From: Macrostomum lignano
Taxonomy: Eukaryota
Reading direction: 5' to 3'
DNA length: 37,432 bases
Assembly: GCA_002269645.1 (NCBI GenBank)
Contig: NIVC01002569.1
Span: 1-37,432, forward strand
Positions 1,381 to 37,432 of this stretch are shown piece by piece (positions within the stretch are counted from its first letter, which is position 1; every line of letters starts with the position of its first letter). A program made the translations under genes and the position numbers. The notes beneath the pieces were generated by a model that ran no database searches, was not told the origin of the DNA, and was given only the letters and a program-made list of their open reading frames with translations.

Positions 1381-1679
1381 CTGCGATCAGCGGTGGGGTT
1401 GGCTGTCGATTAATCTGATCCCGAAATTATTCCCAGCTTCCCAATACGGGGCCTAGAAATCAATCGATTGTCTAGAGCACGAATATCCGATACTGACCGG
1501 CACAGCTTCAGCTTTCTCTCTACGAGAGCATGACCAAGGCATGCCTGGCCCCTGCTGTGAGCCTGTCTGCAACCGGCCTCATCCGCTTTCCTTCATCTTG
1601 CAATGATAATTTTTTAAAGCCTTACTGAGAAAATACGGGAAACCCATAGCAAAAAAGATAGCCGGGCAGTCCAACTCAC

Positions 1680-2521: not shown

Positions 2522-2561
<40 letters not shown>

Positions 2562-7500: not shown

Positions 7501-8735
7501 GCTGGGTGGAGAGGAGGCAGTGAGAGTGACACAGAATGCTGGGTGAAGAGGAGGCAGTGAGAATGACACAATGCTATGAGGTGGAGAGGAGGCAATGAGA
7601 GTGACACAGAATGCTAGGTGGAGAGGAGGCAATGAGAGTGACACAGAATGCTATGAGGTGGAGAGGAGGCAATGAGAGTGACACAGAATGCTATGAGGTG
7701 GAGAGGAGGCAATGAGAGTGACACAGAATGCTAGGTGGAGAGGAGGCAGTGAGAGTGACACAGAATGCTGGCACAGAACGCTGGGAGGTGGAGAGGAGGC
7801 AGTGAGAGTGACACAGAATGCTGGGTGAAGAGGAGGCAGTGAGAGTGACACAAAAATGCTGAGAGGTGGAGAGGAGGCAGTGAGAGTGACACAGAATGCT
7901 GGGTGAAGAGGAGGCAGTGAGAGTGACACAAAAATGCTGAGAGGTGGAGAGGAGGCAGTGAGAGTGACACAGAATGCTGGGTGAAGAGGAGGCAGTGAGA
8001 GTGACACAGAATGCTGGTGAGAGGAGGCAGTGAGAATGACACAATGCTATGAGGTGGAGAGGAGGCAATGAGAGTGACACAGAATGCTAGGTGGAGAGGA
8101 GGCAGTGAGAGTGACACAGAATGCTGGCACAGAATGCTGGGAGGTGGAGAGGAGGCAGTGAGAGTGACACAGAATGCTGGGTGAAGAGGAGGCAGTGAGA
8201 GTGACACAAAATGCTGAGAGGTGGAGAGGAGGCAGTGAGAGTGACACAATGCTATGAGGTGGAGAGGAGGCAATGAGAGTGACAAGAATGCTGGTGAGAG
8301 GAGGCAGTGAGAGTGACACAGAATGCTGGTGCTGGAGGTGGAGAGGAGGCAGTGAGAGTGACACAGAATGCTGGGTGAAGAGGAGGCAGTGAGAGTGACA
8401 CAAAAATGCTGAGAGGTGGAGAGGAGGCAGTGAGAGTGACACAGAATGCTGGGTGAAGAGGAGGCAGTGAGAGTGACACAAATGCTGAGAGGTGAGAGGA
8501 GGCAGTGAGAGTGACACAGAATGCTGGGTGAGAGGAGGCAGTGAGAGTGACACAGAATGCTGGGTGAGAGGAGGCAGTGAGAATGACACAATGCTATGAG
8601 GTGGAGAGGAGGCAGTGAGAGTGACACAGAATGCTATGAGGTGGAGAGGAGGCAGTGAGAGTGACACAGAATGCTATGAGGTGGAGAGGAGGCAGTGAGA
8701 GTGACACAGAATGCTATGGGTGGAGAGGAGGCAGT
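4519..8735. repeat. ~40-bp unit satellite array, ~105 copies
   Basis: Consensus GAGTGACACAGAATGCTGGGAGGTGAAGAGGAGGCAGTGA repeats without interruption for ~4.2 kb. Unit variants are mostly about 36-41 bp, with occasional partial duplications. The + strand is strongly purine-rich. Confidence 0.98.
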
Positions 8736-10397: not shown

Positions 10398-10738
10398 TTT
10401 CTGACCAATACGAGCTATTCTCAATGAGATTCTCAGGGAAATCGCACTGATTTCTGACCAATATTCTCAATGAGATTCTCAGGGAAATCGCACTGATTTC
10501 TGACCAATATTCTCAATGAGATTCTCAGGGAAATCGCACTGATTTCTGACCAATATTCTCAATGAGATTCTCAGGGAAATCGCACTGATTTCTGACCAAT
10601 ATTTTCAATGAGATTCTCAGGGAAATCGCACTGATTTCTGACCAATATTCTCAATGAGATTCTCAGGGAAATCGCACTGATTTCTGACCAATATTCTCAA
10701 TGAGATTCACAGGGAAATCGCACTGATTTCTGACCAAT
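10398..10738. repeat. 46-bp minisatellite, ~7.3 copies
   Basis: Unit ATTTCTGACCAATATTCTCAATGAGATTCTCAGGGAAATCGCACTG. The first copy has a 6-bp insertion (CGAGCT) and two later copies have single substitutions. Confidence 0.95.
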
Positions 10739-12249
10739 AATACGTTGATTAACACTTTCTGGTATAGCAGAGCACTTTTCACACATGCTCAGCGAGTTTG
10801 TTAAAAAATCAGATCCCATGAATTCGCTCAACTTTTGCAGCAATGTCTCACCCCCAGGGGTGCTGGGGAATCCCCGTGGCCCTCTCAATGCAGAAGTTCT
10901 ACGCAAACTGGCTTCGTTTCTCCGCGGCATGAAAAACTCCCGGCGGGGCCCAGGCGGAAAAAGCAGGGAAGCCCCAGGGCAGAGTGGTTGCAGAAAACTG
11001 AGCAGCCGTTTAGCTTGGGAAGGCAAGTGGAATTTCTGATGTCACGATCCAGCGGGCGTGGCATTCAACAAAACAATTGCGGTCAACAATTTTTTTGCCT
11101 TTTTGTCAGCAGAGGTGCCTGAGCTCTTGTCGGTCCGATACCGATGTCGGTCCAAATGACTGAAGACTCGAGTCAATTAACTTGGGGAAACCACAGACCG
11201 GCCACCCGCTTGTCCAAGTGCAATGCAAGGTGGCTGGCGTAGCTAGGTGTATTTCATCGGTATATATACCCAGGTAGCCGGAGGGCGAGTAGAGCGACGG
11301 TGTACGAAAGGTCAATAGTTTTTACCGACAGTTACAGCTAGCGCATACGCATAATGCAGTGCGTATAACACAAAACAGCGAATAAATTGTTTGGCGTCAG
11401 CGCCGCAGGTTTCACTTCAAGCCACGAGCCGCGAGCTTCGTCGGTGAAAACGAGCCGCTGTCTTTCAACTGGTCGGGCTGGCCCAGAGGCATCGTCTGCG
11501 GCACATCGAAGGTGACTGCCGAAAGTGTCGAAACCTTTCGACTGCGCCGGGGCCGCGACCGCTGTACCATGTGGCGAGTGGTCTCTGTGGCGACGTTTAC
11601 ATAGATATTGTCCCCATCAGTCAGTCGCAGGCTCTTAGCGGACCCGTTGGTGCCAAGCTCCATCCATGGGCGAACACCTGCAGTAATTTTAAGAGATATA
11701 GATAGTGAATAAAAAACAGCTACCTCGCAGCCCTTCAGTTTAGTATGGCCCAGAAAACATCTGTCGAGATAGACGAGAACCTTAATATGCTCAACACAAA
11801 GCTGATGCAGTTGTTATTGACGACCGGAGCTTCAAGTGTCCTACCTGGTTTTTGGACCTATCGGGACGCTGCAGCGCGACACGGTCAGGTCCTTGTCCCG
11901 TTTGCTACCAGTATACAGAGGCCTGTGCAATTTCTCCATCTATCCAGAGACCTCCTGTAAGGCCCGTGGCCCCCACTGAGCTTGCCGACGGATCCATCAG
12001 GGTCCTGTTTGACCAACTGCTCGATTCTAGTTTTGGTGTCGAACCAGAGTCGAAATGGTCTTTTGCCCGTTTGGCAAAGCTATCAAGGTATGTTAAAGAG
12101 CTAAATTCCCATCGAGAGAATTTACTGACGCCGGTGAGGCTGTAGAATTCTTTCTGATTGTAGATGCGAGGGCGTAAATGTCTAGCTAAGAACAGGAAGC
12201 GGAACATGCGGAACCTCACTACTGGATGTACATTCCACTGGTCAAGGAA

Positions 12250-18298: not shown

Positions 18299-21200
18299 AT
18301 GGCTCACGCCAAGGTTGCGCCACAATCGCTGACTGATGATGAGGCGGAGATTCTGAGAAGTACGCGACCCGAGGATCAGGATCGAGTAAGGATTTCAGCT
18401 GATTGTAAATTTCCCACACGGATCTCTCTGGCTCCTTTCATTTAGGTTGGCGCACTTTGAGCTGTTGGGCACGAATAAAAAACTTGTTTCCATAGCAACC
18501 CTGTGCTTTAGAGGCAAAGGAAAGAGCTTTTTCTGCTGTTTTGGTAAGCCGGAGGGACTTCGTGTTAACCACCTTTTAACCACCCCGAAAGTAGAAATAC
18601 AAAAGACAAAAGCAAACCTGACAACAAAAGGCAGCAAAAGTAGGAAGTGGCTGGGAAATCCTGGCGAGGCGGATCAAAGCGGCTCTTTTCCACATCATTA
18701 TTGCCGTTTGCCTCGGATTTCAACTGGGCTCTGATGTGAGATGCTGGAGCCAACCAATAAAAGTACATTTTTAATGCCTGCGTGCCCTTGAGCCATGAGC
18801 CTAGCATGCTGCAGCAGCTGCAGGATTCCGTGAGAAAGCCCCAGGTAGAGAGGCCACTAGAGCAGCGGGAAAGCAACTGCTGCAAGAAGAGATAAAAATG
18901 AGTTCTCTGTGGCAGCGGTACCCAACTTAAGCGAAGAGATGCTGAGTAGTACTGGCACAAGAGTGGAGAAGACATGCGATTGCCTGTCATGAGTACAGTC
19001 CCAGAAATAATGCTCTCTTCTTTCTGGCATTCAGACCATTCACCCAAGCAACCCCGACCTCTCGACAGCCTGTGAAAACAAAATTTCTGCCCTCATTCTC
19101 TGCATTTCTGCAGTGGGGTGTTCCCGGTTTGGGGTAAATCGCGTGAATGTGACATTCCCAAAGTCCACAAGCTTATTTGAACCCAAGGAGCTGTATCTTT
19201 ACTCAAGTCTATGCCGTGTCAAATCGATATCCAGCCGAGTTTACGGGAGGTACTGGAGAAATCAAGTCAATAAAATGAAATTATAAAACGTCGAAATGCA
19301 AATATTCAGTAGATGAGGAAACAGCACATTATGTTCTGTCAGAGTTAGTGAGTAAACTTGACAGGCTGAAATATAAAATAGACTGTTAGCACCTCTACGA
19401 ACGTGCTCCCCCATGCTTGCAGAGACACGAGATCTTCTCCAGCAGGCTAGCCGGCAGCCCGCACCAGAACGTGCTGGACCTCTTCCTGACCGGGGAGCGA
19501 GTGTCCTGCACCCAGCCTTGCTTGGGACGGCGAGACGGCGAGCGCTCGCCCTACACCTGGCTGTCCTATAGAGAGGTAGGCGCTTAGAAGGGGCCTGATT
19601 GGAACATTAGCTTGATTGATATTTGGATTCCAATCGATTTAAGCGAATGGACTTTTGCCAGCCATCAAGAAAATTGATACGCTGTTTCCCGCTAATGAGG
19701 GGCTTGTCGGGATTTGCAGTCAGCGAGGCGGAAAGCTGTAGTGCTGCTTCAAGCACTGACAGTAGATCAGATTTATACAATAGTTGAATCTTGAGGATAG
19801 ATATAGCTAAAACTATAGACAAAGTCTAGCTGGAACTGTGAGCACAGTGAGTTTTGTGGCCTCTAGCAAAGGAAGTTTTGTCAGTCCCCAGCAACTGGAC
19901 TTGTTCAGAAACCTATGCGGGTTTTGAGGTAAGAGAGGCCAACACAGCCGTTTACCCACCGGTTACAGGTGCTGCAGCAGGCCCGCTGCGTGAGCCACTT
20001 CCTCACCGGGCAGCTGCATCTTCGACGCGGCGCTTTCGTGGCAATCTGGTCGAAGAACCGGACCGAGTGGGTGACGCTGGAGCTCGGCTGCTTCATGACG
20101 GGCCTCGTGCCGGTGCCACTGTATGACACGCTCGGCGACGAGGCCTGCGACTACGTGCTGAAGCAGACTGGCGCGGCCGTCATGCTGTGCGAGGGCCGGG
20201 CTCAAGCAGCCGGACTGACTCGGCTCAAGTCGGGCGCTCAGATCCAGCACCTGATTCAGCTGGACTTCGCCGAGGTGGCCAACAGTGAAGTCGCGGAAGG
20301 CCCCAAGGTCTGGAGCTGGTCGGACGTGCTGAGCACCGGCCGAGAGCTGGAAGAGCGGCTGGCACAGGCTGGAAAGCAGCAGGAGCAGCCGGTGGGCAGG
20401 GCCGACCTGGCTGTTCTCTGCTACACCAGCGGAACTACAGGTGGGCGGAAAAAGCGATCAAAGTATGATTAACTGACCGTACTTAATTGCAAAGGAAGCT
20501 GTCTATTGGCTTTTCTGCTGCTCCCAGAGGATAGTTTCAAATTCAAGTCCCACGAATACTGCGGTTATTCCTTGCATTCTGTTCTCTGCAGCCATTGCAA
20601 GACTTCATTCATAAGCCCTTGAGGCATCTCGCGCATGCACATCATCACCTAACAATGTAACATCAGTGTCTTCAGTAGATAGTGCAGCGCAAGAATATCA
20701 GAGGGCAAAAAAATCATTTTTTGAGTCATTCCTTATTCCCCTCGCAGCGAGGATTGAAATTAACTTCAGACGAACTTAATTATCATACTAACATCACCCC
20801 TCAGGCCCACCGAAGGGAGTGCAAATCACACACGGAAATCTGGTGGCAGAGGTTCTCGGGATGCACGAGTTCTTGGTGGCTCATGGAGGCCAGGTGAGCA
20901 TGAGCATGAGTGCTATGAGTGCTAGTACGAGTACGAGTTATCAGTATCAGTATCTGTATCCCGGAGCAATTGCAGTATCAGTGGGTAGAGAAAGAATTTC
21001 CGTCCCCAGACCAACCTGCTTGCAGCTTAGCTTGTTGCGGGAGGGAATCCGATGCCCATTCGCTAATTGTACCAAGCTTAAAATCTGATCTTAATTCCAT
21101 TATCTACTGGAATTCAAAGCGGTCCAGCGTAAATTGCCTGAGACTTCAAAGCAAAATAGCGCAAAAACTGCCTTTGCCAGCACGCACCTGTGCCTCACCA

Positions 21201-22859
21201 CGACGACGTGTACCTGAGCTACCTGCCGCTGGCGCACATCTTCGAGCGCATTATGCAGCTGTTCTGCTTCATGCAGGGCATGCGGATCGGCTTCTTCCGC
21301 GGCGACATCGCTGGCCTCACAGCCGACATGCGGGAGCTGCAGCCCACCGTCTTCTGCACCGTGCCGCGACTGCTCAACCGAATCTACGACCTGGCGCACG
21401 CCAACGTGGCCGGCAGCTGCCTGAAGTCGCTCATCTTCAACCTGGCGCTGCGCAAGAAGACAGAGGAGGTTGACCGCGGCGTTATCCGCAACAACTCGAT
21501 GTGGGACTCGCTGGTCTTTTCCAAGGTGCGCGAGCCCACCGGGGGCCGCATCCGCCTCGTCATTGTGGGTTCCGCGCCGCTCGCCGAGTCCGTCATGCGG
21601 TTCGCACGAGCTGCCTTCGGCTGCCCCGTCATGGAGGGCTACGGCCAGTCTGAGGCCACCGGCGGCTCCACCTGCACTCCGCCGACCTGCGTCTCGACCG
21701 GCCACGTGGGCGTGCCTCTGTTTCAGAATGCCGTCATGCTGCAGGTATCCGGGTTCTGGGTGGGGCTGCTGGTAGTGGACTGGAGGCATGCACATTTATT
21801 TTTCCCAACAGTTTACTTCGGCGATTGTGTATTCAGTCGCTCAACACTCTACATGTACAAGATTCATCGTTTTTTCATCGTTTAGCGCACCCCTTCCTGC
21901 CGCGCAGGACGTCCCTGAGATGGACTATTTCTCTCGGGACGGCCGTGGTGAGGTCTGCGTCCGGGGGCCAAACGTTACCAGCGGTTACTTCGCCCAGCCG
22001 GACAAGACGGCTGAGGCCATCGACAGCGCTGGCTGGCTGCACACGGGCGACATCGGCGAGTGGCTGCCCGGCGGGCTGCTGAGAATTATCGACCGCAAGA
22101 AGCACCTTTTCAAACTGGCGCAAGGCGAGTACCTGGCGCCCGAGAAGATCGAGCAGGTGTACGCTACCTGTCCTACCATCCAGCAGGTGTACGTTGACGG
22201 TGACAGTCTGGAGAGCTGCGCGCTGGCAGTGGTAGTGCCCAGTGCCGAAGCGGCACAGGCCTGGGCGCATCGCCATCGCGAGGACTCGGCGGGCTCGCCT
22301 GAAGTTGCTATGACAGCCGCCTGCGGCAGCGAGGAATTCAAGCAGGCAGTGATGCAGGAGATGCTGGCGGCGGGGAAGGCGGCTGGTCTAAAGTCGTTCG
22401 AACAGGTGTGAAACTGTTGCCACTTTTTCGTCTTTTTCAATTAAAGCCTTCAAAATACCGCTGTTATCACAGAAATCTGCGGCTGTTAGAGCCTCTGCAA
22501 TTTTAGCCACTTGATTAGGCCTCTCGATAGCGGACCCGCTCTGAACCCTAATCCAGGCAGGATCGGCTTGTTGTGAATTATGATAGGCTTTGCAGTGAAT
22601 TAATTTTGAACCAAGGTGCTATCATGTGAATGCTTACTCGTATCAGCTGCCTTGACTCAAGCTGCCAAGTTCTTCTAAAAACATTGAAACCTTAAAATCC
22701 GTTCCAAAACAGGCGAAAGACATTGTTCTGCACCCGGAAGCCTTCAGCATAGAAAACGGCTTGTTGACGCCCACCTTCAAAGCCCGGCGGCCTGAGCTGA
22801 GGAAGCGCTTTGGCGATGAATTCAAGCGGATGTACCAGAAGATGAAAACTGGAGGCTGA
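18299..22859 (+). CDS. ACSL: Long-chain fatty acyl-CoA synthetase (ACSL1/5/6-like), 7 coding exons, ~670 aa
   Basis: Exons are 18299-18385 (tentative first exon), 19423-19575, 19969-20440, 20805-20893, 21181-21744, 21908-22405 and 22713-22859, all GT-AG and phase-consistent with no frameshifts. Motifs: PCLG..YTWLSYRE, YTSGTTGPPKG (AMP-binding), YLSYLPLAHIFER, EGYGQSE, GWLHTGDIG, IIDRKKHLFKLAQGEYLAPEKIE, LLTPTFK. Confidence 0.93.
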
Positions 22860-23663
22860 AATCTGAAGACTAAAGAGCTCATGCCAGACATGCAACTTGG
22901 CAACTTGATTGATTTCGTTTTAGCGTCCAGCTGCACGCTTTAGCGGTAAAACGCACGCAGGATGCAGATGGGCACAGAGACTTAGATATGCAAAATACAG
23001 TATTCAGCACCACAGATGCTTGTCAGCGGCTGAAAGGAAAAAAATAATCAGACAAATGTGTTAACTTATAAGTTCTTTTTTTTCTTGCTTCCAGCTGGTT
23101 AATAGAATTTCAAAATCTCAGGGTCACCGGCATCCTCTAGAAGGCAGTTAGTGGGGAGCCAAGATGCCGGCAACTCCCCTACTCAGACTCAGACAGTCAC
23201 TGTTCTGTCTGTCAGTTTGTACAGTGTTGAAGGATCTTTTAGCTGAATTGGGCACATTTAGGCTTCCTGGGCGCCTCGTTACCCAAGACTCATAGTGATC
23301 CTGCAGCCATTGAAACAGTCGACTTGATAGAAACCTCTTTAACTATTTAAATGCTGACAAACTTTACTGTCAGATAAAAAGTGAATTCACACGGATTGCC
23401 CCTGTTTGTGAGGTAAATGGGACGAACCGCACTGCTTTCACTAAGACGCAAGCTCCCCAAAAGATCTTCTTTGAGACGTCAGCACTAAAGCAGCGAGCCG
23501 TCAGTACGCAGTGAATTCCATGACTTCCCTGGTTGACGCCAACGTCCAGGATGTGGCTATCCCCGTTTGGTACAATGCCCTCCTGAATACAGCCCATTTT
23601 AATGTCATTGGCATCACAGTCAGTGATAAGTTGCCATCCCGTGGTTGAAAATGCAGCAATTGC

Positions 23664-23787
23664 TGCCTCCATTTCTCTTAGGCTCTTTTGTGAGCCTGGA
23701 GTGAAATGGGTGTTAGCCATCCACCCCTCGCGCTGTACATTGTGCCGCCTTTGTGCGCCGTCCTCTCTACCCCCCGTGGGGTGGGGG
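23664..23787 (+). repeat. Split direct repeat A1
   Basis: 124 bp identical to 26996-27119 except one C/T mismatch (cgtcctct vs cgtcttct). Confidence 0.95.
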
Positions 23788-24128
23788 AGATCGGCGAGCT
23801 CTTAGACGCTAACTACAGTCCAAGTGTCGTGTGGGAATTCGATGAGGATTACAGAAAGTTGATCGCAGACTCGGATTCGCATCGATGGGGCTGCGAGCCT
23901 CCACAGCTGTACCACCGACACCTTAACGCACCAAGAAACTTAAAAGTCACCCTGAGCAGACCAGCATCCAACCAGTCGCAAGCTCCCATCTGCCTAAGCT
24001 ACAACTCCCCTGCCGGCTGCCAGCGGTCCTCCTGTAGGTACCGTCACGTCTGCAAGCTGCGCGACTGCGGCCGGCCGGCGTCGGCGGCGACGCTGTGGAG
24101 GGAGCAAAAAACTAGATCTTTTTTATAG
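23706..24128 (+). CDS. Truncated gag-like ORF1 with CCCH zinc finger
   Basis: WEFDEDYRKLIA..HRW resembles the YD..FR...A....W motif of DIRS/Ngaro gag. ICLSYNSPAGCQRSSCRYRHVCKLRDC is a gag CCCH/C-rich finger. The ORF is only 140 aa and its ATG lies inside repeat A1. Confidence 0.7.
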   Translation: MGVSHPPLALYIVPPLCAVLSTPRGVGEIGELLDANYSPSVVWEFDEDYRKLIADSDSHRWGCEPPQLYHRHLNAPRNLKVTLSRPASNQSQAPICLSYNSPAGCQRSSCRYRHVCKLRDCGRPASAATLWREQKTRSFL

Positions 24129-24150
24129 CCGCCCTGCTTTTAACCCCCGT

Positions 24151-25700
24151 TTGCCGTCGCCTTTTATCTTGCCTCCCTCTGCTCATTGCCCTGCTCCCAC
24201 CCTGCTCTCTCCACCGCGCCGCGCTCTGTCGTCCAACATGAACCTTGCCGCCTGGGAGCCGCTGCTTCTGGGTGACCAAGACGAAAATTTTTTCGCAGCG
24301 GCCTTAGTTACGGCTTTCGGCTCGTCAATAGGTCGCCGCCTTCTCTTGCCTGCTCCGCCAACTACCGCTCAGCCTTGGACCAAGCCAAGCAGGTTGATGA
24401 ACAGCTCGCCGAGGAGCTCCGTCTCGGCCGCCTGCAGCTCGCCAATGGCCCTGTCATGATGAACGCCATCGGGGCGATTCCAAAATCTGACGGCAGTGTC
24501 CGGGTCATTCATGACCTTTTTAGACCTTCGGGGTCCTCCGTCAACGACAGCTATGAGCAGGAAAAGGGGCTGCGCTTCGCCTCTGTCCAAGACTTGAACC
24601 GCTATCTTCGCCCAAGCTCGTTTATCGGCAAAATCGACCTCAAGCAGGCCTATCGTTCCGTCGGTATTCACCCAGACGACCAGGTGCTCACGGGCCTCAG
24701 CTGGCGGTTTGCTGCCGACAGCGATGACTCGGTGCTCGTTGACACCCGGTTGCCCTTTGGTGCTCGAGCGTCATGTGAAATTTTCCATCGCTTATTGGCC
24801 GGCATCAAGCGCCACATGCTCAGCATTGGCTTCACAGCTACCGTCAACTACTTGGACGACTGGGCAGTAGCCACTGATACTGAAGAAGCGGCTCAGGAGG
24901 CCTTCAATTATCTGGTTGAGCTACTGCAGAACTTAGGCTTCGACATCAACCGGCAGAAGACCGTGGCTCCAGCTCAACACGTTGTGTTTCTCGGCGTGCT
25001 GGTTGACATTGTGAACGACACTCTGTCACTTCCAAGCAACAAGAAAGACGACATTAGGAAACTGCTGAACGATTGCCTGTCACGTGACGTTGTTAAGCTG
25101 AAGCAGCTCGAAAAACTGGCCCGAAAGCTGTGCTGGCTCAGCCAGATCAACAGGCTTTTGCATCCTTTCCTGCGTCCGCTCTTCGACATCCTCAGCTACA
25201 GAATGGACACCCGGCTGCCATCTGAGCTTCGCACCTCTTCCTCTGGTGGCTGCGCGTCGTGACTCTGCCGCCGACGGTCATTCGCCCCCGTTTTCGTCAA
25301 CTTGTGGCCATCGAATCTGATAGCAGTTGCGAGGGTGCTGCTGGCATCGTCTTTGGCAGCGAATTCAATGACTGGACGTACTTCAGCTGGGAGAAGGACT
25401 TCGAGAGCAAGTTCCGCGACCTTCACATCAACCACAAAGAGGCGCTGGCTCCGCTGCTTACCATCCTGCGCTTCCGCGAGCAGCTTAGGAACAGCCGCGT
25501 TGTGATTTACTCGGATAGCACTGCTCAATAATGGCATGGTCAATAAGCTGTCCTGTCGGCATCCTCTGCTCATTCGCATCTATCAGACCGTTGCTCTCGT
25601 GTGCCTCACGTCGGGAATTCAGCTCCAGGCGTTCCACCTTCCTGGCCAGATGCAGCTGCTGAGCGACTCCGCTTCTAGAATGGGGGGCTCGAGCAGAGAG
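24151..25700 (+). pseudogene. Reverse transcriptase plus RNase H of the YR retrotransposon, broken by three frameshifts
   Basis: RT motifs KIDLKQAYRSV, RLPFGARAS, YLDDW and FLGV are in ORF 24375-25262. RH motifs IESDS, HINHKEALA, VVIYSDS and HLPGQMQLLSDSASR are in ORFs 25259-25531 and 25536-25874. Frame changes occur at ~24290, ~25235 and ~25525. Confidence 0.9.
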
Positions 25701-25755
25701 CTCATTAATTTTTGCTGCCGTCTTTACGGCTCTTTATGCATTTGCCCTTTCGAAT

Positions 25756-26770
25756 TTGCTTCCCACACCATTTCTGCCGTGTCTCGCACCCTCTTTATTC
25801 ACAGGTCGCAGCCGCGCTCCGCTCCGTTCCACCGTGTCTGTGTCCGCTCTGTGCCGCCTGTCACTAGCGCCTAGTTCCAGGAAGTCCTATGCGAGCCACT
25901 TACAAGTCTGGAACGAATTCTGCCGGCAGCGTCGAATTCCTGCGACCGCGCCTCCGAGTCTGATTCTGCCAATTTGTCTCGTTCCTGTTACAACGTGGAC
26001 CGGCGTCCTACTCCAGTGTGCAGTCAAGCCTCAGCGCGGTGTCTTTCCTTCATAGGGCTTCCGCGTCGCCAGACCCGACCAAGGGCAGCGCTCGCCTGGC
26101 TCTCGTGTGTCGCGGGGCTCGGCGTCTTCTGAGCCGGCAGTCTCGGCGTGCGACGCCGCTGAAGCCCAGCCACCTCCGCCTGCTCTGCAGCTCCACCGAG
26201 CTACGTCATTCGCTGCCAGCATTGCAGGTGGCCTGGTGGGGAGTCCTTAGGCTCGGCGAGCTCTTACCATCCACCGCTGCGGACGCTCTTCCCTGGAGCT
26301 GCCTATCAGCGTGCCCCGGTGGTCTGCGGCTGGTGCTCAACAGGTCAAAGACAAACCAATTCAAGGAGCGGCAACTGGAAGTTTTTCTGCCGCAGGCCTC
26401 TGAATGTCTGCTTATCTGTCCCGCTTCCGCACTAGCAACTCATCTGCGCGAGAATCAAATCTACGCGTCGCAGCAGCCCCTGTTTTCTGTCCTAGGCAGC
26501 CGCGGCCGGACTCTCTTGTCTGCCGCTATGTTCATCCGGCTCCTAAAGCGGGGCATGTCTCTGTGCGGCTTTGGTGAGTGCGGCTTCTCAGGTCACAGTC
26601 TGCGTAGAGGGGGGGCCAGCGCTGCCTTTCAGTCAGGCCTCTCAATCGCCGACATCCGTTGCATAGGCGACTGGCGTTCAGACTGCGTCTTTCGGTATTT
26701 CTCTGATGAGGCGTCATTTGCCCGCCGTCGGACAGCAGCTAGGCGGATCGCTGCCTGCCTGGCCTCTTGA
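25756..26770 (+). pseudogene. Tyrosine recombinase of the YR retrotransposon (one frameshift near 25969)
   Basis: The N-terminal part LAPSSRKSYASHLQVWNEFC continues, after removing one base, as QFVSFLLQRGPASYSSVQSSLSAV. Catalytic motifs LRLGE, GHSLRRGGA, GDW and FRY are intact in ORF 26018-26770. Confidence 0.9.
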
Positions 26771-26901
26771 CTGCTTACTCGCTCGTTTTTTTTACCCTTT
26801 GGCGTTTTACCTTGGCGTTCGTGGCCTGGCTTTGCTTACTTTTGCTGCCTCCTTGCTTTTATCTTCCTGTTCTCTCCTTTTCTCCTCCTTTTTTCGGGGT
26901 T

Positions 26902-26994
26902 GGGGTCGCTTTCCCCACCTCTCGCGCTGCTTCGGGCCGTAGACCTTTGCCTGCCTGCTGTTCGTCTCATTTGCTGTTGGGGTGTGATTGGTTA
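26902..26994 (+). repeat. Split direct repeat B1
   Basis: GGGGTCGCTTTCCCCACC...GTGTGATTGGTTA recurs at 27256-27344 and abuts A2 with one intervening base. Confidence 0.93.
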
Positions 26995-26995
26995 A

Positions 26996-27119
26996 TGCCT
27001 CCATTTCTCTTAGGCTCTTTTGTGAGCCTGGAGTGAAATGGGTGTTAGCCATCCACCCCTCGCGCTGTACATTGTGCCGCCTTTGTGCGCCGTCTTCTCT
27101 ACCCCCCGTGGGGTGGGGG
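26996..27119 (+). repeat. Split direct repeat A2
   Basis: Copy of A1 (23664-23787). Confidence 0.95.
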
Positions 27120-27255
27120 GTTTGCTCACCCGCTTATTTATATGCACGCCGCTCTCTGTGCCCGTCGCTTGCTTTGGCTTTGAAGCTCAAATTTTTTTAA
27201 ACACATTTTTTTCTTTTAATCTCGTTTGCTTGCAAAATAAACTTATCGTTACTAC

Positions 27256-27344
27256 GGGGTCGCTTTCCCACCTCTCGCGCTGCTTCGGGCCATAGACCTT
27301 TGCCTGCCTGCTGCTGCTATTTGCTGTTGTGGTGTGATTGGTTA
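27256..27344 (+). repeat. Split direct repeat B2 (right terminus of element)
   Basis: Copy of B1 with a 1-bp indel, two substitutions and a short diverged patch (ttcgtctc vs ctgct). Confidence 0.93.
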
Positions 27345-28699
27345 TGGGTATAAAGTACTCGAATCAAACACGCATCAAGTGTGTGGGTCAGCTTCTGGAA
27401 GACCCAATGGCATGATGCAAGCCCATCTAACAGATACGGTTTTGTGCGCATGTTGAGGTTACCATGGGACCCACCGGCGGGGTTGGTCCTCAGACGGTTG
27501 CGCATCGTCATGCGTTGCCTTTGAGTGCGTTTGAATGAGAACAGCTTAGGCCTCTTACTCGGAGTTCGAGTTCTCGAGGCCACCAGAGCAGGTATCCTCG
27601 CTCTAAAGTAAACTTAAAGTCTCTGCATCACTTAAGTTAATACGTGAATGAAAAATACGGGTTTTATGAAATACAAAGAGTTTAAATTAAGCCTGTGCGA
27701 GAATTTGGCATTAAGTTTCCTATTATATTTGGTAGTCCTACACCAAGCAAATTTCATAAAACCGAATTCGGCTATCTAAATCTTTTCTGGCAATACTTGA
27801 CAAGTCTTAATAAATTTACTTATCGCTTATTGAAAGAAAATTTTACCGAGGAATCAATCGCTGGGGAGAAAATAGTTTAGTAGGACGCAGAGTAATATAT
27901 TCTCGCGATTTACTATGCTCGTATTCTCATCATTTCGCGAGTACGCACGCGCGCACAGCGAAACATCAGCTGCGAGCATAAATCGGAGTATTATATCGGC
28001 GACACCACAATAGGCGTGAATAAAAACATAAGGAGAGCAAAAGATTCAGACAGAATCAGATGGCTTTGTTAATAAAGGCTGTTATAGCGAATCAGATTAA
28101 TAATGCAGAACAAAATGGAGCAGTGTCGAATTGCTGGGGAGATGGGACGATAAGCAAATTCTCTTAGGTGCAACCAAGGACAACTAAGAAGGACGCAACA
28201 CTCACAAAATGCGTAAGACAATTTGAAGGAGACAATTCAAGTTCAAATTAAAGTAAAAAAGCCAAAACCATAGAATCACCTGTATTAATGCATATTAATG
28301 AATACGAAATTGCCTGTCTGCAAAATTTCAGTTTTGACTGCAAACTAGAAAACTATCTGCACTTATATGCTCGCTAAATCCCACCTTCAAAAACATTTAC
28401 AATTCGTGAGTGTTGCGACCTCCTTGACGAAATTTTCTAGTGGCCCTTGTGTGGAAAAGTTCAGACAAAGAATTTCTAAAAAAGCATACTAGTATTACTA
28501 GACAAAGATTTGACATGGTTATATGTCCAACAATATCAGGAAAGAAATCAGACTGTAAGTTAAGGAACGCTGGCCGAAAATGACCAGATCTGAAAAATAC
28601 CAATTAATTCAACGGTGCCGGTGGCTACACATTGGTTTGTAGAAAAATTTATAATAGCTATAGTAATCTCCGATATGCTAAAAAGGAATTGTCTCGATT

Positions 28700-29447
<748 letters not shown>

Positions 29448-29619
29448 GATTTTTCACAGCAGATGTAAAAACTACGAGTCAAATAAGTTGAACCTGGGAA
29501 TTAGTTTTTTTTCGAATACTTTTCCACTTGTATAATAAATCCAGAAAATCTCATGGAATTGTGCTTCAACAGATAGCTATAGTTGAACTCTGTTGCTGCT
29601 GAAAAAGTGAGGGCCCAAC

Positions 29620-32600
29620 TTAGGCAAGGAAGGCGTGCTCCAGGAGGTCGGTGGTATCCATCCTCGCCTCGGGTTCCTTTACAACGCAGCAGCGGTAGAA
29701 GTTGCGCAGCTCATTGGACACTTTTGCTGAAATGTCGGGCATCTCGTACTTGTGGAAGTAGCGCGGGATCTGCATTGGCAGCAGGTGGCTGTTCGGCGGC
29801 TTGCCTTCTGCCATCTCAAAAACGGTGCAGCCGAAGGCCCACACATCGGACTGGGGCGTGTACTGGGCGTTGCCCTCCGCGCTGTGCAGCTCTGGCGCCA
29901 TGAAGTAGGGAGTGCCGCACTGGTTCATGCTGATGTAAGCAATTTTCGATGTGGTGATTTCTTTAGCTAGGCCGAAGTCGATCAGCTTGACAATGCCCTC
30001 ATGAGTGAGCATTACATTGGAACACTTAATGTCCCGGTGCAGGATGGCCGGCCTCCGTCTGTGCAGGAAGTTGAGGGCCGCGCAAATCTGTGAAGGAACC
30101 AATATTTGCTGATTTGATGTGTTTTCATAAAAATAATTTAGTTATTTCATGCTACTAATATTGCTACTCAGGTGCAGCATTACCTGCTGAGAAAACTTCT
30201 TTATTCCGGACTCCTCAAACGGCTTCCTCTGCCGTTTCATCAAATCAAAGAGGCTGATTCCGGCGATGAGTTCAGTGAAGATGCAGAACTGACCACTGTC
30301 ATCGAGCTCGGATTTTAGGAACACAACGATATTCGGATGTCGGACGGTCTTCAAAATTTCTATACCTTTCCTTTCCTGCTCGATTGCTCTTTTGTACCTC
30401 TTGGGATCGTTGCCCTTCATTGTGACAATCTTTACAGCCACGAACTGGTGCTTATCTGTGTAGGCCTTGTAAACCTTGCCAAAGCCACCCTCTCCGATGG
30501 GCCTCTTCTTGTTGTCATCGTCACAGATGATGTCCCACTTTGTGAAGTTGGGGTCGAGATAATGTGCGGCGGGTTCGGACGCAGCCCTAGCGCCAGCCCC
30601 AGCCCCAGCCCCAGCTGCAGCTTTGGGCCTCTCGGCATTTCGCAGAAACCTGTGCTTCAGAAGCTCAGTTGAGGTGAACCTCTGCTCGGGATTCTTCGCC
30701 ACACAGTGACGGTAAAATTCGCGCATGTCAGAAGAATATTTTTTTGATGGCAGAGGCATTTCCTGCATTTCCTTGAGCACATTGGGAATCTGCTGTTCCC
30801 GCTTGTCTCTGTTTGGAGGCTCGCCTTCTGCCATTTCGAAGATAGTGCACCCAAACGCCCAGATGTCCGTCTTGGGTGTGTAGGAAACATGCGCCTGACT
30901 GCTGAACAGTTCAGGAGCAAGGTAATACCAGGTGCCGCACTGGCTCTCAGTCACTGCTGCGATTGTTGAAGTGACGATCTCTTTAGCGAGTCCGAAATCA
31001 ATCAACTTGATTACATCCCGCTTTGTCAACATAATGTTGGAGCATTTGATGTCCCTGTGCAGAATTGCAGGCTTGCGTGTATGCAGAAAATCCAGCGTTG
31101 AACAAATCTGAAGAAGCATGTCAAGCGTGATTAATCAGTTCTGTGATTTATTCAACATCAACATCACCATCAAAAATATAAATCTACATATTTACCTGGG
31201 AAGCATAGCTTCTGATTTCCGACTCTTCAAAAGACTGCCGATCCTTCAAGTGGTCAGCCAGACTCATGCCGTCAATCAACTCAGTGAAGACGTATACGGC
31301 TCCATCCTTCTGTTCGGACTTTAAAAAGATGGCTATATTTTGGTGACGAATGGCCTTCAAAACTTCAACGGCTTTCATCTCCAAGTCGATGGCTTTCTGA
31401 ACGACTCTATCGTTCTTGGCACCCTTGAGCTTGGTTACTTTCACTGCAATTGTTTGGCCCTTGTTTGTGCGCGCCTCGTAGACCCTGCCGAAGTTCCCTT
31501 CGCCGATCAACTTTTTCTTACGTCTCTCATCATAGATGTAGTCCCAGTCTGTAAATGTGGCGTCCAGATGATCCTCTGTGGACCTAGAAATGCGATTGTT
31601 GGATATCATTGAATACATAACACCGGTGAACATAATTTTAAAGGCATAAAAAAGCAAAAAATTACTCCTGTCTCTGATTGGCGCCGCCAGGTCTTCTACT
31701 TGGACTTGGCTTTTCGCGGGAACCAGATTTCTGCAGAACCTTCAGGAGCTCTTCGTGATTGCGCTTCTTTGCGATATCCACAGCGTTCTCCCCTTTCTGG
31801 TTCGGCTTGCCCACACTGCAGCCGCGGCTCATGAGAAATCGCACTGTCTCGGGGCTCGCGTCCGCCTTCACAGCCCGCATCAATGGCGTGTTGCCATCGG
31901 TGTCCGGAGTATCCAGAGGAGCACCCACTTTAGCTAGGAACTCAAGAAGCTCTATGTTGTCCTCTTTTGCTGCGTACCAAGCCAGAGTCTTGCCGTTGTC
32001 ATCCTTCACGGAGATGTTGCACCCTTTTCCGTGTAGGTATTGAACCATATCAACGGAGCTCTTCTGTGCCGCGCATAAAATGGCGGTCTCATTTATTTTG
32101 TTCGGCAAATCCAGTTTAGCTCCAGACTCTCCCAAAGCCATCAGGATCACAAAATGTCCGTTGTAGGCAGCCCTCAAAGCAGGAGACACACCGCGCTTGT
32201 TCTGATGATTCAGATCGCTTCCTTCGGAGATCAGAAAGCCGACCGATTCTTCAGGACCCACCTGGCAGGCACCAAGGAGTGCGGTTTCACCATTCTTCTT
32301 GTTGACCTGCTTCATTGACAAGCCCATTGCGCGTAGCTCTTTAAGCATGTCGACCTGCTGGTTTGAAGCCGCAATCATGGCGAAGTCATAGCCGTTGAAC
32401 TCGATGTGATCAATCGAGCTCCTGCATCAATGAGCATGTGGAAGATGGGCAAAGAGCCCTGCTTGATTGCGCACTCTAGTGGCGTTGTTCCCTCCTCGTC
32501 TGCCTGGTTGACATTCGCGTTACTGCGAATTAACAGCCGCACAATGTCGTCGTGCCCGTTGTTCACTGCCGAAAAAATCGGAGTTCGACCAGTGATGCTC

Positions 32601-33400
32601 GTGTGGTTTATGTTGCAGCGCTTCTCCAGTAAGAAATTTACGACTTCAAAGTGATCGTTTTGAGCAGCGCAAAACAGTGGCGTGTGTCCACGATCGTCCG
32701 TGAGCTCAAAGTCAGCCTTGTACTTGTTCAGCAGAAGCATAATGTCCAGGTGCCCATTTAGAGCGGCAATAAACGCCATTGTGCGGCTCTGGGCGAGCTT
32801 ATGGTTGCAGGCTTTGCGGTCCGGGTGATTCTTCAACCAGAAGTCGATAATTCTTACGTTACCTTCCTGCGCAGCGGTCATGAGGGTCTTCTCGTGCACC
32901 ACCGAGTCGAATTGCAGGCAGCGCCTGACGTTCTCCAGTGTTGTGACGATAACAAGACTCCTCTTCATCAGACCGATATCCGCTGCTGTGTGGCCCTTGT
33001 TGTTGATGTGAGCCACATTGGCCCCCTTCTCAATAAGAAGTTCGACCGGCTCCTGCTTTTTGTTGATGACGGCGGATATGAGTGGCGTATCACCATCTTC
33101 GTCTGTGGCATCGATTTCCGCTCCTCGTCTTAGCAGCTCCCTGATCACATCCGTGTGTCCTTCATGTGCTGCAAGGTGCAGTGCGGTAAGACTCTTTTTG
33201 CCTCGAGCGCTTGGGTCGCCGCCGCCATCCATGAAGGACAGGCACCGCCGACGATCACCGGAGGCAGCCGCCTTCAGAAAGGATTTAACTGCTGGTGGAG
33301 TCGGATCTTCGCTGCTGCTGGTGGAACTGGCATCTTTCCGCTTTTTTTGAACTCCCTCCATGAGCTCCTCCAGGTGCTCCCGGAGCATTCGTTCGAAATC
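29620..33400 (-). CDS. Ankyrin-repeat protein with two tandem Ser/Thr kinase domains (STE/MAP3K-like), at least ~1170 aa, 5' exons not located; one 1-nt deletion at ~32413
   Basis: Exons are 33400-31666, 31583-31196, 31107-30184 and 30087-29620(TAA), all GT-AG. There are about 16 ANK repeats (TALHLAA, TPLISAV, TPLFCAA, TPIFSAV, TPLMRAV and others). Kinase 1 has [24 protein letters not shown] and kinase 2 has [24 protein letters not shown]. Restoring one base at ~32413 makes the ANK exon 1736 nt, which fits the phase-2 junction. Confidence 0.88.
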
Positions 33401-36400
33401 CTGTAGTGGTGGGGGTCTCTGAAAGAGAAGGGGCAGCTGTCGTACATGAAAATATTTACACGTAGCTTTTTATGCAGTCTTACATATGATTTATACAAAA
33501 TTTTTAACCAAATGATTTGGTACCTTGTTAAAAAATCAAGGTTTCAACTAGATTACTTACACTTGACATGCTTCGGCAAGCAGTGTGTCAAATTTAAATA
33601 CCCACAGAGTAAGCTGATCTCCTACGAGCTTATAATTAATTGTGGATAAGAATTTTTACAGTTAAACGAACGTAATGCTTTTTTTGCCAATCAGTTGAAT
33701 GCGACACACTATAAATCCAAGCTTTGTACAGAGACAGCATCCCCCCGCCCTCAGTCAGAGAGGACAGAAAAAATACTCATGCCCAGTACAGTATGCGATA
33801 TGCCTGTGTACGTACACCTCCGAATGTACTGGCATGGCGCTACGCTCGTATTTGCGCTTTCTGCGTCGCAGTAAAAAAGTTTGCTTTGATGCGAATAGGC
33901 AAGCAAAATAAGGTACTTTAAATTGATAACCCGCGGGTACGTACGTCTGCTGTACTGCGCGCAGTCAGTAGCGACTGCATTACATCTCTGCACTACCAGC
34001 ATTACCATACCAGCTTGGATATTTTACACTTCTATTTGTTTTATACAGAGACGAAAATATAATTTCCTTTCCATCCAAGATAAGAAAGCAAAAGCAAAGC
34101 TGATTCTAATATTTTTACTTTGATATTCATGTAGTACCTTGTAGCCGCGAGAGCAACGTGCAAGCAGACCCGGACACGCCCTGTCTTGCAAATCCGTGCT
34201 GCTTTTTAGACGATACGGATGCAAAAAATTTTTTATTAACTACAGACTGAACAGATTGAGGGAATTTTTTTGTTTTTTTGCTTTACCTGACTGTAAATAT
34301 TTTACCCCATGCACAACCCTAAAGAAACTTTTCCCAGAGACATTACTTAGTTAATCTTACGATCTTAAATGAGGTATTAAAAATACACAACATGCAACAA
34401 CACCTATCCAGTGCAGCATCTAATTAAGTAGCGGGGAGGCGTGACGCTTTGAGACAGCGATATGGCGGTGAAGCTGCATGTGACTTGATCTGTTGGCCCG
34501 ATAGGTATTCGGTGGTCTGTGAGCTATAGCTGTTTCTGTTAGCGGCAGGCTTTCGGATACGGGTTCGGAAGGTTTGAACTAATTCCGAAGACCAAAAGCA
34601 GCAAAAACCTCCAAACCAACAAAAGGTAACAGCTCGAAATGCACTATTATATATATTACATCGCCACGAGTAAAATCTGCTTGCGGGTTGCGGCCGTCAG
34701 CTAATATTATCGACAGGAAATAGAAGCCCCCAATGTTTAACATAAAACAGAGCAAGACGGTCTTTGACCACGAGACACGCTCGCTGTCACCGCAAACTGC
34801 TTCGGGAAGTACATGTACACGTACTCGTAAATTTACGATCATGGAAATAGAAGTTCTATACAGTGTACATACATGTACATGTTTAAATGATTTGTCCAGT
34901 GTTCACGTACAGCTCACTTCACAACAAATGTCTTTTAATTTAATCCAGTTGTTTTTATTCCGTTGCTAATCCTGATGCGTCCCTATTGCATTTAATGTGT
35001 CGCATTATCTCCTCTCCTGCATCTTAGAATTTTTGAGAATTTCTAAATTTATGAGACTTACCTTTTCCACTTTGGACATGCATTTTGGGGCCAACTTTCA
35101 GCCTGCACGAAGTCCCAGAAATAGTAGCCGCTGATTAATTTTTCAACAAAAGTAAAAAACTGAAAGCCAAATGGCTTCATTTTCCCAAAAAATTGATTTG
35201 TTGTTTTTTAAAGAGAAATTCAGGTTTGCGCGCAGATTTCTTAGAATCATTTGCTAAATAATTCATTCATGGCTTTATGGCTCTTGTCGGATCTACGTCC
35301 TAAGCATTTTTATCACTTTAATTTTTCTTTCATGATAAAAGAAGCCCCATTATAGGAAAACATTATTTTTGATCCTTTGAGTCCATTTAGTTACATAGGT
35401 TGAAACTCACCACTTAGTGTCAGCCTGTCAGGTAGGCCTGCTAGTGCAGTGTAGTGTATATCAGTATATGGATTAATGAATAGGGCTTAGAGATTTAGCC
35501 AGAGCAGTACAGTAGGAAGATCCTTTTGGGGATTGATTTGATCTATTTGATCAATGGATATGAGGATATGATGGATATAAACTATCTATGGTAGTTTTAG
35601 TATCTAAGCACTTAGCTAATGAGAAAAAAGACTAGGCCTAGGCAAAGTTAAGCATACATATAAATTTAATATCTATTTTACCTTTATTTAAGTTTTAACT
35701 AAGCAATTGCTAGTTATAGACCCATTCAAAAATCTATACTGAATAAACAAATTAAAAAGGGTCTAAAATTGTTTTACTTATATAAAATAATAAAATATGT
35801 TCAATAGGTCCCTATTTAAAACATTTTAGCTGTGGCAATTGCTAAATAGTAACATTGCTATTCTAGTTCCACCAGTGAACGAGCTGAGCCCGGCGCCGCC
35901 AAAGGCCAAAGGCGGCATCGGCGAGAGCAAGAGAACCCGAGGCCCATCAGGGGCTGAGGGCGAGTGAATAATTTCTACCCATGGCGGCCGAAGGCCGACA
36001 TGGGCTAGAAAGTATTTACAAGTAAATAAGTTAGACTCTAATGCATTTTGAAATTTCACGTTTTTCTGCCAAAAAATGCTCCTGTTTTGCAACCACTGCA
36101 CCAATTGAGTTGAGTGAGGTGTCGATCGATAGAAAACTTTTAGATCTATCGAATGAATGTACTTTTAAATGCAGAGATTTTTTAAATGAGCCGTAAAATA
36201 ACTGGAAAGACAATTTTTTCAAAAGTGCTTCTAGGAGATCTCAAAATTCTGGTACACCTTACGAGATACAGCTTCGCCATCTGAGAATCAAAGTTGTAAA
36301 ACTAAATTTCCTACAAAATGGTATATGGCGCTTTGATTTATTTTGGTATCTTTATGTAGTTTTGGTGGGTTTTTTGGGTAAAAAAATGACCCTCATTTTA

Positions 36401-37432
36401 TTATTTCCCCACTTTTTCCTACGAACCTTTTTAGGTTTCGGCTTCAAAGCAGTGCATTTGGATGCGCAATGCAAATATCTACAAGTGTCTAAAGTTTTGC
36501 TTTCCTACGCTTCTACAGTGCTGAGAAAATTGACAAAAATCAATTTTTCAAAAAATCACATGACTTTCGCATTATTGCTCATTATAATTTTGAGAACATG
36601 GTGCGAATAAGCCAATATCGAATTTCTATAGCATAGTTGCTGTACTATATTGGTGTAAATTGCTGCCGTCTGCTTTCACTGCTTTCGGATTGAAAAATCG
36701 ATCAGAAATCGATAATTTGTGATTTTTGGCTGATTGAGTGCCAGAAAATGGGTGATTAAAATTTTAAAAGAATGCTAGATCAAATGTGGATACTGCAACG
36801 AATTGTACTAATGTCTGGCTAAAATTGACCAAGTTTTTGAGTGTCTGCAACAAGTGCTCATGTGTCAAAAGTGATTCGAAATCGATCAGAGTAGTGATTT
36901 TTTAATATTTTGCTTGAAATCAGGCAAAAAAACGCAATAAGATGGCATTATTTTTATGACGGCTGATTTCCCAAAAAACGAGGTATATTTGTGTGCAATT
37001 TCTAGAGATTCGGTTTATTTAGTAAAAATTATCGATAAAAAACTGAAAACTTGACTTTTTACTTTCATGTTAGTTCCGGGGCTATTTAAACTGGAAATGG
37101 TAGGAATTTTGCACTGAAACCAATGCACAGTGTTCCATATAGTTAATTTAACAAATTTCTTGAATTTCATAACCATTCAATGTTTTTTCATGTAAAAATG
37201 CCTTTTTTGCATCGAAATTCATCACATTAAGCTGCATACCGCTTTGCATAATCTGCATTTGCATGTGATTGCTTGCATGGCTTTGGCATTGGGCTAATTA
37301 AGCTGTTAGAAAGGAAGGAAAGGAAAGGAAAGGAAGGAATAATCGTACATACAATGTACACACCCGTCCCTTCCAAGTGGGGTGTTGGCAACGCGGAGGG
37401 CTTGGCAGCTTGTTTGGAGGGCGTGTAATAGA

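Follow-up and report, generated by a model that had tools for sequence, protein, structure and literature searches.

Plant tandem kinase proteins are products of duplication or fusion with an RLK/Pelle origin, mostly combine a kinase with a pseudokinase, carry no ankyrin (ANK) repeats, and are demonstrated immune receptors. RSK joins an AGC and a CAMK domain of different origin via a regulatory linker with docking motifs. Animal proteins that combine ANK repeats with a kinase fold have one kinase or pseudokinase domain (of TKL, CAMK, or RNase L type) and approximately 4–10 repeats. To our knowledge, few animal tandem kinases have two domains that both look active, RSK/MSK being the classic case, and we know of none in which a pair of paralogous STE-like domains is found together with a long ANK array. 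Here, we describe a gene with this layout, Mlig002250, in a 37,432-nt stretch of the genome of the flatworm Macrostomum lignano (contig NIVC01002569.1, analyzed at its full length and referred to as the window). Its product carries the ANK array N-terminal to the kinase domains, as do TNNI3K, ILK, and RNase L. Our best overall explanation, to which we assign a probability of roughly 60%, is that Mlig002250 is a gene in four copies in which a kinase module has been duplicated, that the two kinases form a built-in active pair, and that a frameshift in the window's copy is an error.

Six-frame translation and splice-site reading delineate a five-exon gene on the minus strand of the window at positions 29620–33569. 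Its parts, from the start codon onward, are the following (CDS, coding sequence; K1 and K2, first and second kinase domain; a slash marks residues on the two sides of an intron; residue numbers here and below are those of the 1180-aa product P0121).

33561..33569, minus strand: CDS exon 1, ATG TCA AGT encoding MSS, followed by a GTAAGT donor; agrees with the N-terminus of P0121.
33419..33560, minus strand: intron 1, 142 nt, GT..AG.
31666..33418, minus strand: CDS exon 2, N-terminal acidic/helical region, all 16 ANK repeats, and a Ser/Pro/Arg-rich tail.
Roughly 31725–33292, minus strand: the ANK array inside exon 2.
31584..31665, minus strand: intron 2, 82 nt, GT-AG; the donor overlaps an apparent stop codon, and the junction QE/STEDH is confirmed by P0121.
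31196..31583, minus strand: CDS exon 3, N-lobe of K1.
31541–31567, 31487–31504, 31436–31450, and 31358–31393, minus strand: exon 3 motifs, namely the pre-kinase LDATFTDWD, GEGNFG, the lysine motif IAVKV, and the αC segment, respectively.
31108..31195, minus strand: intron 3, 88 nt, GT-AG, phase 0, between SQ and IC.
30184..31107, minus strand: CDS exon 4, 924 nt or 308 codons in a single open frame, with the C-lobe of K1, the linker, and the N-lobe of K2.
31030–31059, 30973–30999, and 30901–30918, minus strand: K1 motifs of exon 4, HRDIKCSN, DFG, and APE, respectively.
30580..30621, minus strand: low-complexity inter-kinase linker (14 residues, aa 880–893).
30532–30558, 30478–30495, and 30427–30441, minus strand: K2 motifs of exon 4, LDPNFTKWD, GEGGFG, and VAVKI, respectively.
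30352–30387, minus strand: αC segment of K2.
30088..30183, minus strand: intron 4, 96 nt, GT-AG, phase 0, at the same SQ/IC position as intron 3.
29620..30087, minus strand: CDS exon 5, C-lobe of K2 and stop codon.
30010–30039, 29953–29979, and 29881–29898, minus strand: exon 5 motifs, HRDIKCSN, DFG, and APE, respectively.

The first-pass annotation of this DNA, which was made from the letters alone, described about 16 ANK repeats followed by two complete kinase domains joined by a short linker, and this description holds. With the terminal caps, the ANK repeats number 16 (aa 46–568, by manual and hidden Markov model count); in Pfam, the array matches Ank_2 (e value 1.6e-92) and is followed by two full-length Pkinase matches, K1 at aa 589–880 (e value 1.6e-61) and K2 at aa 903–1180 (e value 1.4e-57). 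Scored against PF00069, for which the cut-off is 31.7 bits, K1 reaches 208.4 and K2 195.5 bits, and both span profile positions 3–263 of 263. The AGAGAGAGA linker lies between the two domains within one exon, the short segment described at first being 14 residues of low complexity inside exon 4. The K1 motifs are GEGNFG (615–620), K636, HRD (734–736), DFG (754–756), and APE (781–783), and those of K2 are GEGGFG (922–927), K943, HRD (1042–1044), DFG (1062–1064), and APE (1089–1091), so that the triad predictive of activity is complete in both domains (K636/D736/D754 in K1 and K943/D1044/D1062 in K2). Common to K1 and K2 are the Gly loop, the β3 Lys, HRDIKCSN with the catalytic-loop Lys and Asn, DFG, APE, and D(I/V)WAFG. 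Because the C-lobe of K1, the linker, and the N-lobe of K2 share an uninterrupted 924-nt exon, the fusion of K1 to K2 is independent of splice prediction, and the observed ANK-K1-K2 architecture is confirmed as real. The encoded protein of 1180 aa is probably cytoplasmic and consists of a short N-terminal region, the 16 ANK repeats, K1, a flexible Ala/Gly linker, and K2. As a side observation, skipping of exon 4 would join the N-lobe of K1 to the C-lobe of K2 in a hypothetical isoform with a hybrid single kinase; the reading frame would be kept, as exon 4 has a length of exactly 308 codons and the introns on either side of it are in phase 0 at the homologous SQ/IC position.

The gene in the window is BOX15_Mlig002250g5, one of four copies (g1, g2, g4, and g5) in assembly Mlig_3_7 (GCA_002269645.1). 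The copies g1, g2, and g4 are located on separate contigs, are near-identical, and each encode an intact 1180-aa ANK-K1-K2 protein. The window aligns with the g2 contig over positions 22927–37432 at 99.4% identity and over positions 19746–22920 at 99.5% identity. The DV1 line has extra chromosomes, and 180 Mb of its PacBio/Canu assembly consist of non-repetitive blocks that are at least 95% identical (PMC5730564); extra chromosomes and redundant assembly blocks account for the four gene copies. When 1.84 billion representative proteins were searched exhaustively with phmmer, a 1180-aa match emerged that is 100% identical across the whole kinase–kinase query, and the matched cluster is that of BOX15_Mlig002250g2 (PAA71750.1). 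The sequence is already public (PAA71750.1, UniRef A0A1I8J3B8) and is labeled as a hypothetical protein. A word-indexed homology search had omitted the gene's own 90% cluster (P0121) despite its presence in the collection searched, and the exhaustive search of representatives recovered it; judged by the word-indexed search alone, the tandem layout would have seemed to lack any annotation.

The models for these genes are based on transcripts: they were derived from RNA-seq assembled with StringTie and TACO plus a de novo transcriptome, cut by TBONE at mapped trans-splice and poly(A) sites, with open reading frames (ORFs) called by TransDecoder (PMC5730564). In the deposited RNA-seq-based models, the 1180-aa ORF is the longest ORF of the assembled mRNA on three contigs. 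The question raised in the first-pass annotation, namely whether the ANK part and the kinase part are encoded by separate mRNAs, is therefore answered by transcript-based models that join the two parts and by the exon that K1 and K2 share. These data also bear on the idea that two adjacent ANK-kinase genes, or a collapsed tandem array, have been misjoined by assembly or annotation. Ab initio models of M. lignano do fuse neighbors, as in P0011 (kinase, ANK, partial kinase) and P0159 (ANK-kinase twice over), but for Mlig002250 such an artefact is effectively refuted: the stretch from K1 to K2 contains no ANK repeat, stop codon, or intron, the identical structure is present on four contigs that are told apart by distinguishing single-nucleotide polymorphisms, and the models rest on transcripts. 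A collapsed repeat is likewise inconsistent with the data because K1 and K2 are only 55% identical.

The window's copy differs from the other three in one important respect. At approximately 32415/32416 on the minus strand, within ANK repeat 9, g5 carries a 1-nt deletion; the window reads ggagctcgattgatcac where g2 and g4 read cgG att and g1 reads cgA att. In g5 only, the ANK array and the kinases are thus not in a single open frame, and because the frame, with this base missing, runs into a stop at 32375, the deposited g5 product (P0261) starts at M351 (ATG at 32378) and has a length of 830 aa. With the one base restored, the CDS of the window translates into a protein 100% identical to that of g2. 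A micro-intron at the frame break was considered and rejected, as the ANK repeat reads through and g1, g2, g4, and the paralogue P0002 are collinear there. The frameshift probably reflects an error in the PacBio consensus of a redundant contig, judging by the kinds of differences seen: within the gene, the differences private to the window relative to g1, g2, and g4 are two single-base deletions and no substitutions, and the 14.5-kb overlap with the g2 contig contains 38 gap openings versus 26 mismatches. A preponderance of deletions and gaps of this kind is the signature of errors in PacBio consensus sequence.

The less probable, although still serious, possibility is that the deletion is real and that g5 is a genuine pseudogene or an N-terminally truncated allele, which would yield at most the 830-aa protein with 6–7 ANK repeats and K1-K2. 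The ORF from M351 is otherwise intact, and the deletion persisted through Pilon polishing with Illumina and RNA-seq reads (PMC5730564); polishing, however, is unreliable where regions are duplicated at 99% identity. Moreover, DV1 carries extra chromosome copies and redundant gene copies (PMC5730564), among which the loss of one copy would be tolerated. The older ML2-based model P0262 also jumps the frameshift site, a point that tells against an error; yet the PacBio reads behind ML2 are also those behind Mlig_3_7 (PMC5730564), so the agreement is not independent and neither confirms nor refutes an error.

The claim that the gene is lineage-specific is borne out by homology searches, in which every relative with more than 45% identity is from M. 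lignano, except for one Logan transcript. The family comprises 38 clusters from M. lignano or Logan (clustered at 90% identity), to the kinases of which K2 is 41–59% identical. Each of these clusters covers only one kinase of the kinase–kinase query, and most carry ANK repeats; in the two homology searches combined, 26 proteins have at least two ANK repeats and a single kinase. In the nearest paralogues, BOX15_Mlig024438g2 (P0002) and P0001, the ANK array of approximately 16 repeats is collinear with that of Mlig002250 at 58% identity. Family members share with Mlig002250 the LDxxFxxW(D/N) lead-in, the HRDIK(C/S)SN kinase, and the phase-0 SQ/IC intron in the kinase. All these paralogues are hypothetical proteins and, as exemplified by P0002 and BOX15_Mlig023526g1 (P0126), they have one kinase, whereas Mlig002250 has two in tandem. 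By these features, Mlig002250 belongs to the Macrostomum ANK-kinase family, and its sole departure from it is the presence of two kinase modules.

To understand how the second module arose, the two kinases can be compared with those of the paralogues. The kinase of P0001/P0002 is 59% identical to K2 and 46–49% identical to K1, no paralogue is more than 51% identical to K1, and the K1 branch is about twice as long as the K2 branch. In neither neighbor-joining (NJ) nor quartet analyses was K1 ever paired with another paralogue. The comparisons show K2 as the counterpart of the single kinase of the paralogues and K1 as the more diverged and faster-evolving duplicate. The simplest reading is that the whole kinase module, consisting of the lead-in, the domain, and the phase-0 intron, was duplicated in tandem and in frame within one gene, roughly at the time of the split from the Mlig024438 lineage, with K1 evolving faster afterwards. 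Introns 3 and 4 occupy homologous positions, but their sequences no longer align, as would fit an old duplication. We regard the anatomy and the origin by duplication as highly probable.

Other multi-kinase models exist in M. lignano, namely P0130/P0274 (BOX15_Mlig009993g1), P0122 (UniRef A0A1I8G4U5), P0159, P0011, and P0167. One kinase–kinase and one kinase–kinase–kinase model have an HRDINCSN loop, with Asn in place of the catalytic-loop Lys, and lack ANK repeats; the model with two ANK-kinase units (P0159) and that with a kinase on both sides of an ANK array may represent fused neighboring genes.

Both kinases were initially described as STE-like, and similarity searches agree. The best-matching solved structures are MST3/STK24, STK25, MST4, SLK, and LOK, followed by ASK1 and NEK7, at 110–137 bits; STE20 structures score 120–137 bits and ASK1 approximately 115 bits, in a set of solved structures in which STE11 is under-represented. 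Outside flatworms, the best-matching sequences are MEKK-type MAPKKKs of plants and MAP3K19, at 32–38% identity. Designating the kinases as STE-group-like is justified on these matches, the similarity being too low and too even for placement in STE11 versus STE20. K2 further resembles the STE group in a GTPYFMAPE-type subdomain VIII. Unlike Mlig002250, these STE-group kinases have neither an ANK array nor a second kinase, and all of them have the canonical αC Glu.

It is with respect to this last residue that the initial description of each kinase as carrying a full set of motifs, and of both as catalytically intact, stands only in part. The Gly loop, Lys, HRD, DFG, and APE are indeed in place; the αC Glu is not in its canonical column (11 residues before the Asn of HPN and 4 before the regulatory-spine residue RS3), where K1 has Ala and K2 has Gly (G965). 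Both domains instead have Glu at positions +2 and −3 relative to this column. At αC, MST3, MAP3K19, and plant MAPKKKs align without gaps, with the hydrophobic register kept and the RS3 Leu at +4. Among 32 family members, 26 have Gly or Ala at the canonical column together with Glu at +2, and five (P0003, P0004, P0005, P0009, and P0012) have the canonical Glu together with Ser or Ala at +2, so that Glu at the one position and Glu at the other are perfectly anticorrelated across the family. The Glu at −3 is invariant within the family and absent from outgroups. Being common to 26 of 32 members with a single kinase, the αC substitution is a family trait and not the decay of a redundant copy, and the pattern suggests compensation rather than decay.

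These residues are also what must be weighed if one of the two domains phosphorylates and the other acts as an allosteric regulator or decoy, as in JAKs and most plant tandem kinase proteins. The longer branch of K1, its lower identity to its closest relative (55% vs. 59% for K2), and the loss of Glu from the canonical αC column in both domains are compatible with such a division of labor, and one domain is inactive in most known tandem kinases. However, K1 and K2 have retained the catalytic Lys, HRD, DFG, and APE across approximately 45% sequence divergence; the Gly loop and the catalytic-loop Lys and Asn are likewise present in both, the αC substitution is shared with kinases that have no partner domain, and K1 is under constraint on par with the other modules (dN/dS, the ratio of nonsynonymous to synonymous substitution rates, of 0.10). 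We consider a regulatory pseudokinase in this protein unlikely. An asymmetry in the activation loop, by which K2 would activate K1 (Ser in K1 and Asn in K2 at the position of MST3 Thr178), was dropped as a candidate, the column not being conserved as Ser/Thr in the family.

Between g2 and g4, dN/dS is 0.10 for the ANK array, 0.10 for K1, and 0.06 for K2, which shows these two copies to have diverged under apparent purifying selection in all three modules. Diversifying selection in the ANK repeats, which had been put forward as a check on a role in recognition, did not materialize in this comparison. This bears on whether Mlig002250 encodes an innate-immunity or sensor receptor in which, by analogy with plant tandem kinase proteins, a variable ANK array would recognize a ligand or a pathogen factor and the kinases would relay the signal. 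Such a receptor would fit a family that is lineage-restricted and expanded, N-terminal ANK arrays that differ between subfamilies (units of approximately 60 aa in P0004 vs. 33 aa here), and a tandem-kinase layout otherwise linked to plant immunity. Between g2 and g4, however, the ANK array shows purifying and not diversifying selection, the STE-like kinases are unrelated to the RLK/Pelle tandem kinases of plants, and genome duplication makes lineage-specific expansions widespread in M. lignano (PMC5730564). On balance, we find a receptor of this kind improbable.

The explanation that we prefer is that K1 and K2 are both working kinases and that neither would be a decayed pseudokinase. The ANK solenoid may serve as a protein-binding or autoregulatory (autoinhibiting) module, and a flexible linker of approximately 30 residues could let K1 and K2 meet as a built-in dimer. 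Each domain might then phosphorylate the activation segment of the other, a reaction that in STE20-type kinases takes place between molecules, and such intramolecular pairing would make activation independent of concentration. This mechanism, with an ANK module for partner binding or autoinhibition and K1-K2 as a trans-phosphorylating pair, is tentative and, taken as a whole, doubtful. An AlphaFold2 run with the 830-aa product of the window and 35 paralogue rows predicts the ANK array and K2 confidently, with a modeled αC helix that is continuous through G965.

Several observations, in addition to the P0262 model, weigh against the preferred explanation. Because the canonical αC-Glu column holds Ala or Gly, full kinase activity is not readable from the sequence. 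The same AlphaFold2 model has a predicted template modeling score of 0.47 and says nothing of the packing of K1 against K2 or of the ANK array against the kinases, and K1 is poorly modeled because all paralogue rows aligned to K2. The estimates of selection come from small counts, as g2 and g4 differ at 19 synonymous and 6 nonsynonymous sites (25 changes; overall dN/dS 0.09), and it is within these small counts that the comparison gives no sign of relaxed constraint on K1 or K2. K1 and K2 are joined as sisters with a bootstrap of 43% in the NJ tree and 59% in the quartet analysis, where the pairing of K2 with P0001/P0002 receives 41%. No orthologue with both kinases was found in other species, and age and retention of the tandem thus rest on comparison within one genome. 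Finally, we found no biochemical, expression, or phenotype data in the literature for Mlig002250 or members of its family; the literature and its supplements likewise do not mention Mlig002250 or Mlig024438, nor did we find a paper on an expansion of ANK kinases in Macrostomum.

Outside the kinase gene, the window contains the following features.

28700..29447: (TATC)n microsatellite of approximately 188 copies, which begins approximately 170 nt past the 3' side of the stop codon and does not form part of the protein; the g2 contig has it as well.
19746–22920, plus strand: AMP-binding gene, long-chain acyl-CoA-synthetase-like and in convergent orientation to the kinase gene; a conserved neighbor on the g2 contig (668-aa product).
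24375–25262, plus strand: reverse-transcriptase ORF (RVT_1, e value 1.4e-14).
23706–24128 and 26018–26770: ORFs flanking the RVT_1 ORF, with no Pfam match; one resembles a recombinase-like C-terminal ORF by eye.
1579–2976, minus strand: fragment of a SYDE-like RhoGAP gene at the contig end, an exon-sized ORF (SYDE-type C2, e value 3.7e-16; start of RhoGAP, e value 1.5e-08).
4521–8735: purine-rich 40-nt minisatellite, approximately 107 copies with 87% matches.
10416–10739: 46-nt tandem repeat, 7 copies at 98% identity.

The RVT_1 region probably represents a retroelement insertion in the interval that separates the AMP-binding gene from the kinase gene. The peptide MGVSHPPLALYIVPPLCAV occurs at both 23706 and 27038, which suggests terminal repeats. 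The purine-rich minisatellite accounts for the strong GC and AT skew at 4–9 kb and gives rise to long minus-strand ORFs that are spurious.

If K1 and K2 are both active, the protein would be a natural experiment in which an intermolecular activation step has been turned into an intramolecular one. The family-wide swap of the αC Glu, perfectly anticorrelated with Glu at +2, is a small, concrete puzzle for kinase structural biology, and a relocated αC Glu, if true, would form the Lys-Glu bridge in a manner that has not been described before. M. lignano is amenable to RNA interference, in situ hybridization, and transgenesis, and questions on K1 and K2 are therefore directly testable in this animal. 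As a counterweight, the recently duplicated genome contains many lineage-specific duplicates, of which Mlig002250 is one, and the sequence has already been deposited; we regard the gene as a lead rather than a discovery. A far bolder proposal would make it an animal counterpart of tandem-kinase signaling, with an obligate active pair of STE-like kinases behind a 16-repeat ANK sensor, in a fast-expanding, flatworm-specific, receptor-like family for the sensing of non-self or stress, and with the αC Glu relocated (Glu to Gly at position 0 and Ser to Glu at +2); we hold this to be very unlikely.

How rare the layout is can be judged from the 150 best-scoring matches to the kinase–kinase query among the 1.84 billion representative proteins. 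Most of these 150 have at least two kinase domains and include PAK3-like arrays of birds, proteins of oomycetes, amoebae, and bacteria, and plant tandem kinases, but an N-terminal ANK array followed by two kinases is found among them only in the Mlig002250 cluster, in keeping with the view of the first-pass annotation that the layout is unusual. A related composition is seen in a hypothetical protein of the chytrid Phlyctochytrium bullatum (KAJ3099705.1, P0219), in which a kinase, approximately 10 ANK repeats, two further kinases, and leucine-rich repeats (LRRs) follow one another. Like Mlig002250, it combines ANK repeats with multiple kinases; unlike it, this protein is fungal, has another domain order and added LRRs, contains distant kinases, and comes from an unverified gene model.

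The animal proteins TNNI3K, ILK, RNase L, ANKK1/RIPK4, and DAPK1 resemble Mlig002250 in combining ANK repeats with a kinase fold; they are absent from the best matches, and no specific relationship was detected there. RSK and MSK provide a likeness of another kind, as they have two kinases predicted to be active in one chain and offer a model for an internal activation step. The combination of AGC and CAMK domains that characterizes them is not found in Mlig002250, where K1 and K2 are paralogous duplicates at 55% identity, both STE-like, and are joined by a low-complexity Ala/Gly linker. JAK and GCN2, in which one domain lacks catalytic residues and FERM-SH2 or HisRS-like modules are present, are set apart by the presence of catalytic residues in both domains of Mlig002250 and by the ANK array as its sole other module. 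Plant tandem kinase proteins (Rpg1, WTK1/Yr15, Sr60, Sr62, Pm24, and others) have two kinase folds per polypeptide, as does Mlig002250, but its best matches are to the STE group and not to the RLK/Pelle lineage, the plant two-kinase matches (P0041 and P0045) are only 26–37% identical, and Mlig002250 differs in its STE-like fold and in having catalytic residues in both domains. Because it lacks defining features of each of these groups, Mlig002250 is, on sequence criteria, a protein predicted to work like a tandem kinase that is not a member of the plant tandem kinase proteins, RSK/MSK, JAK, or GCN2.

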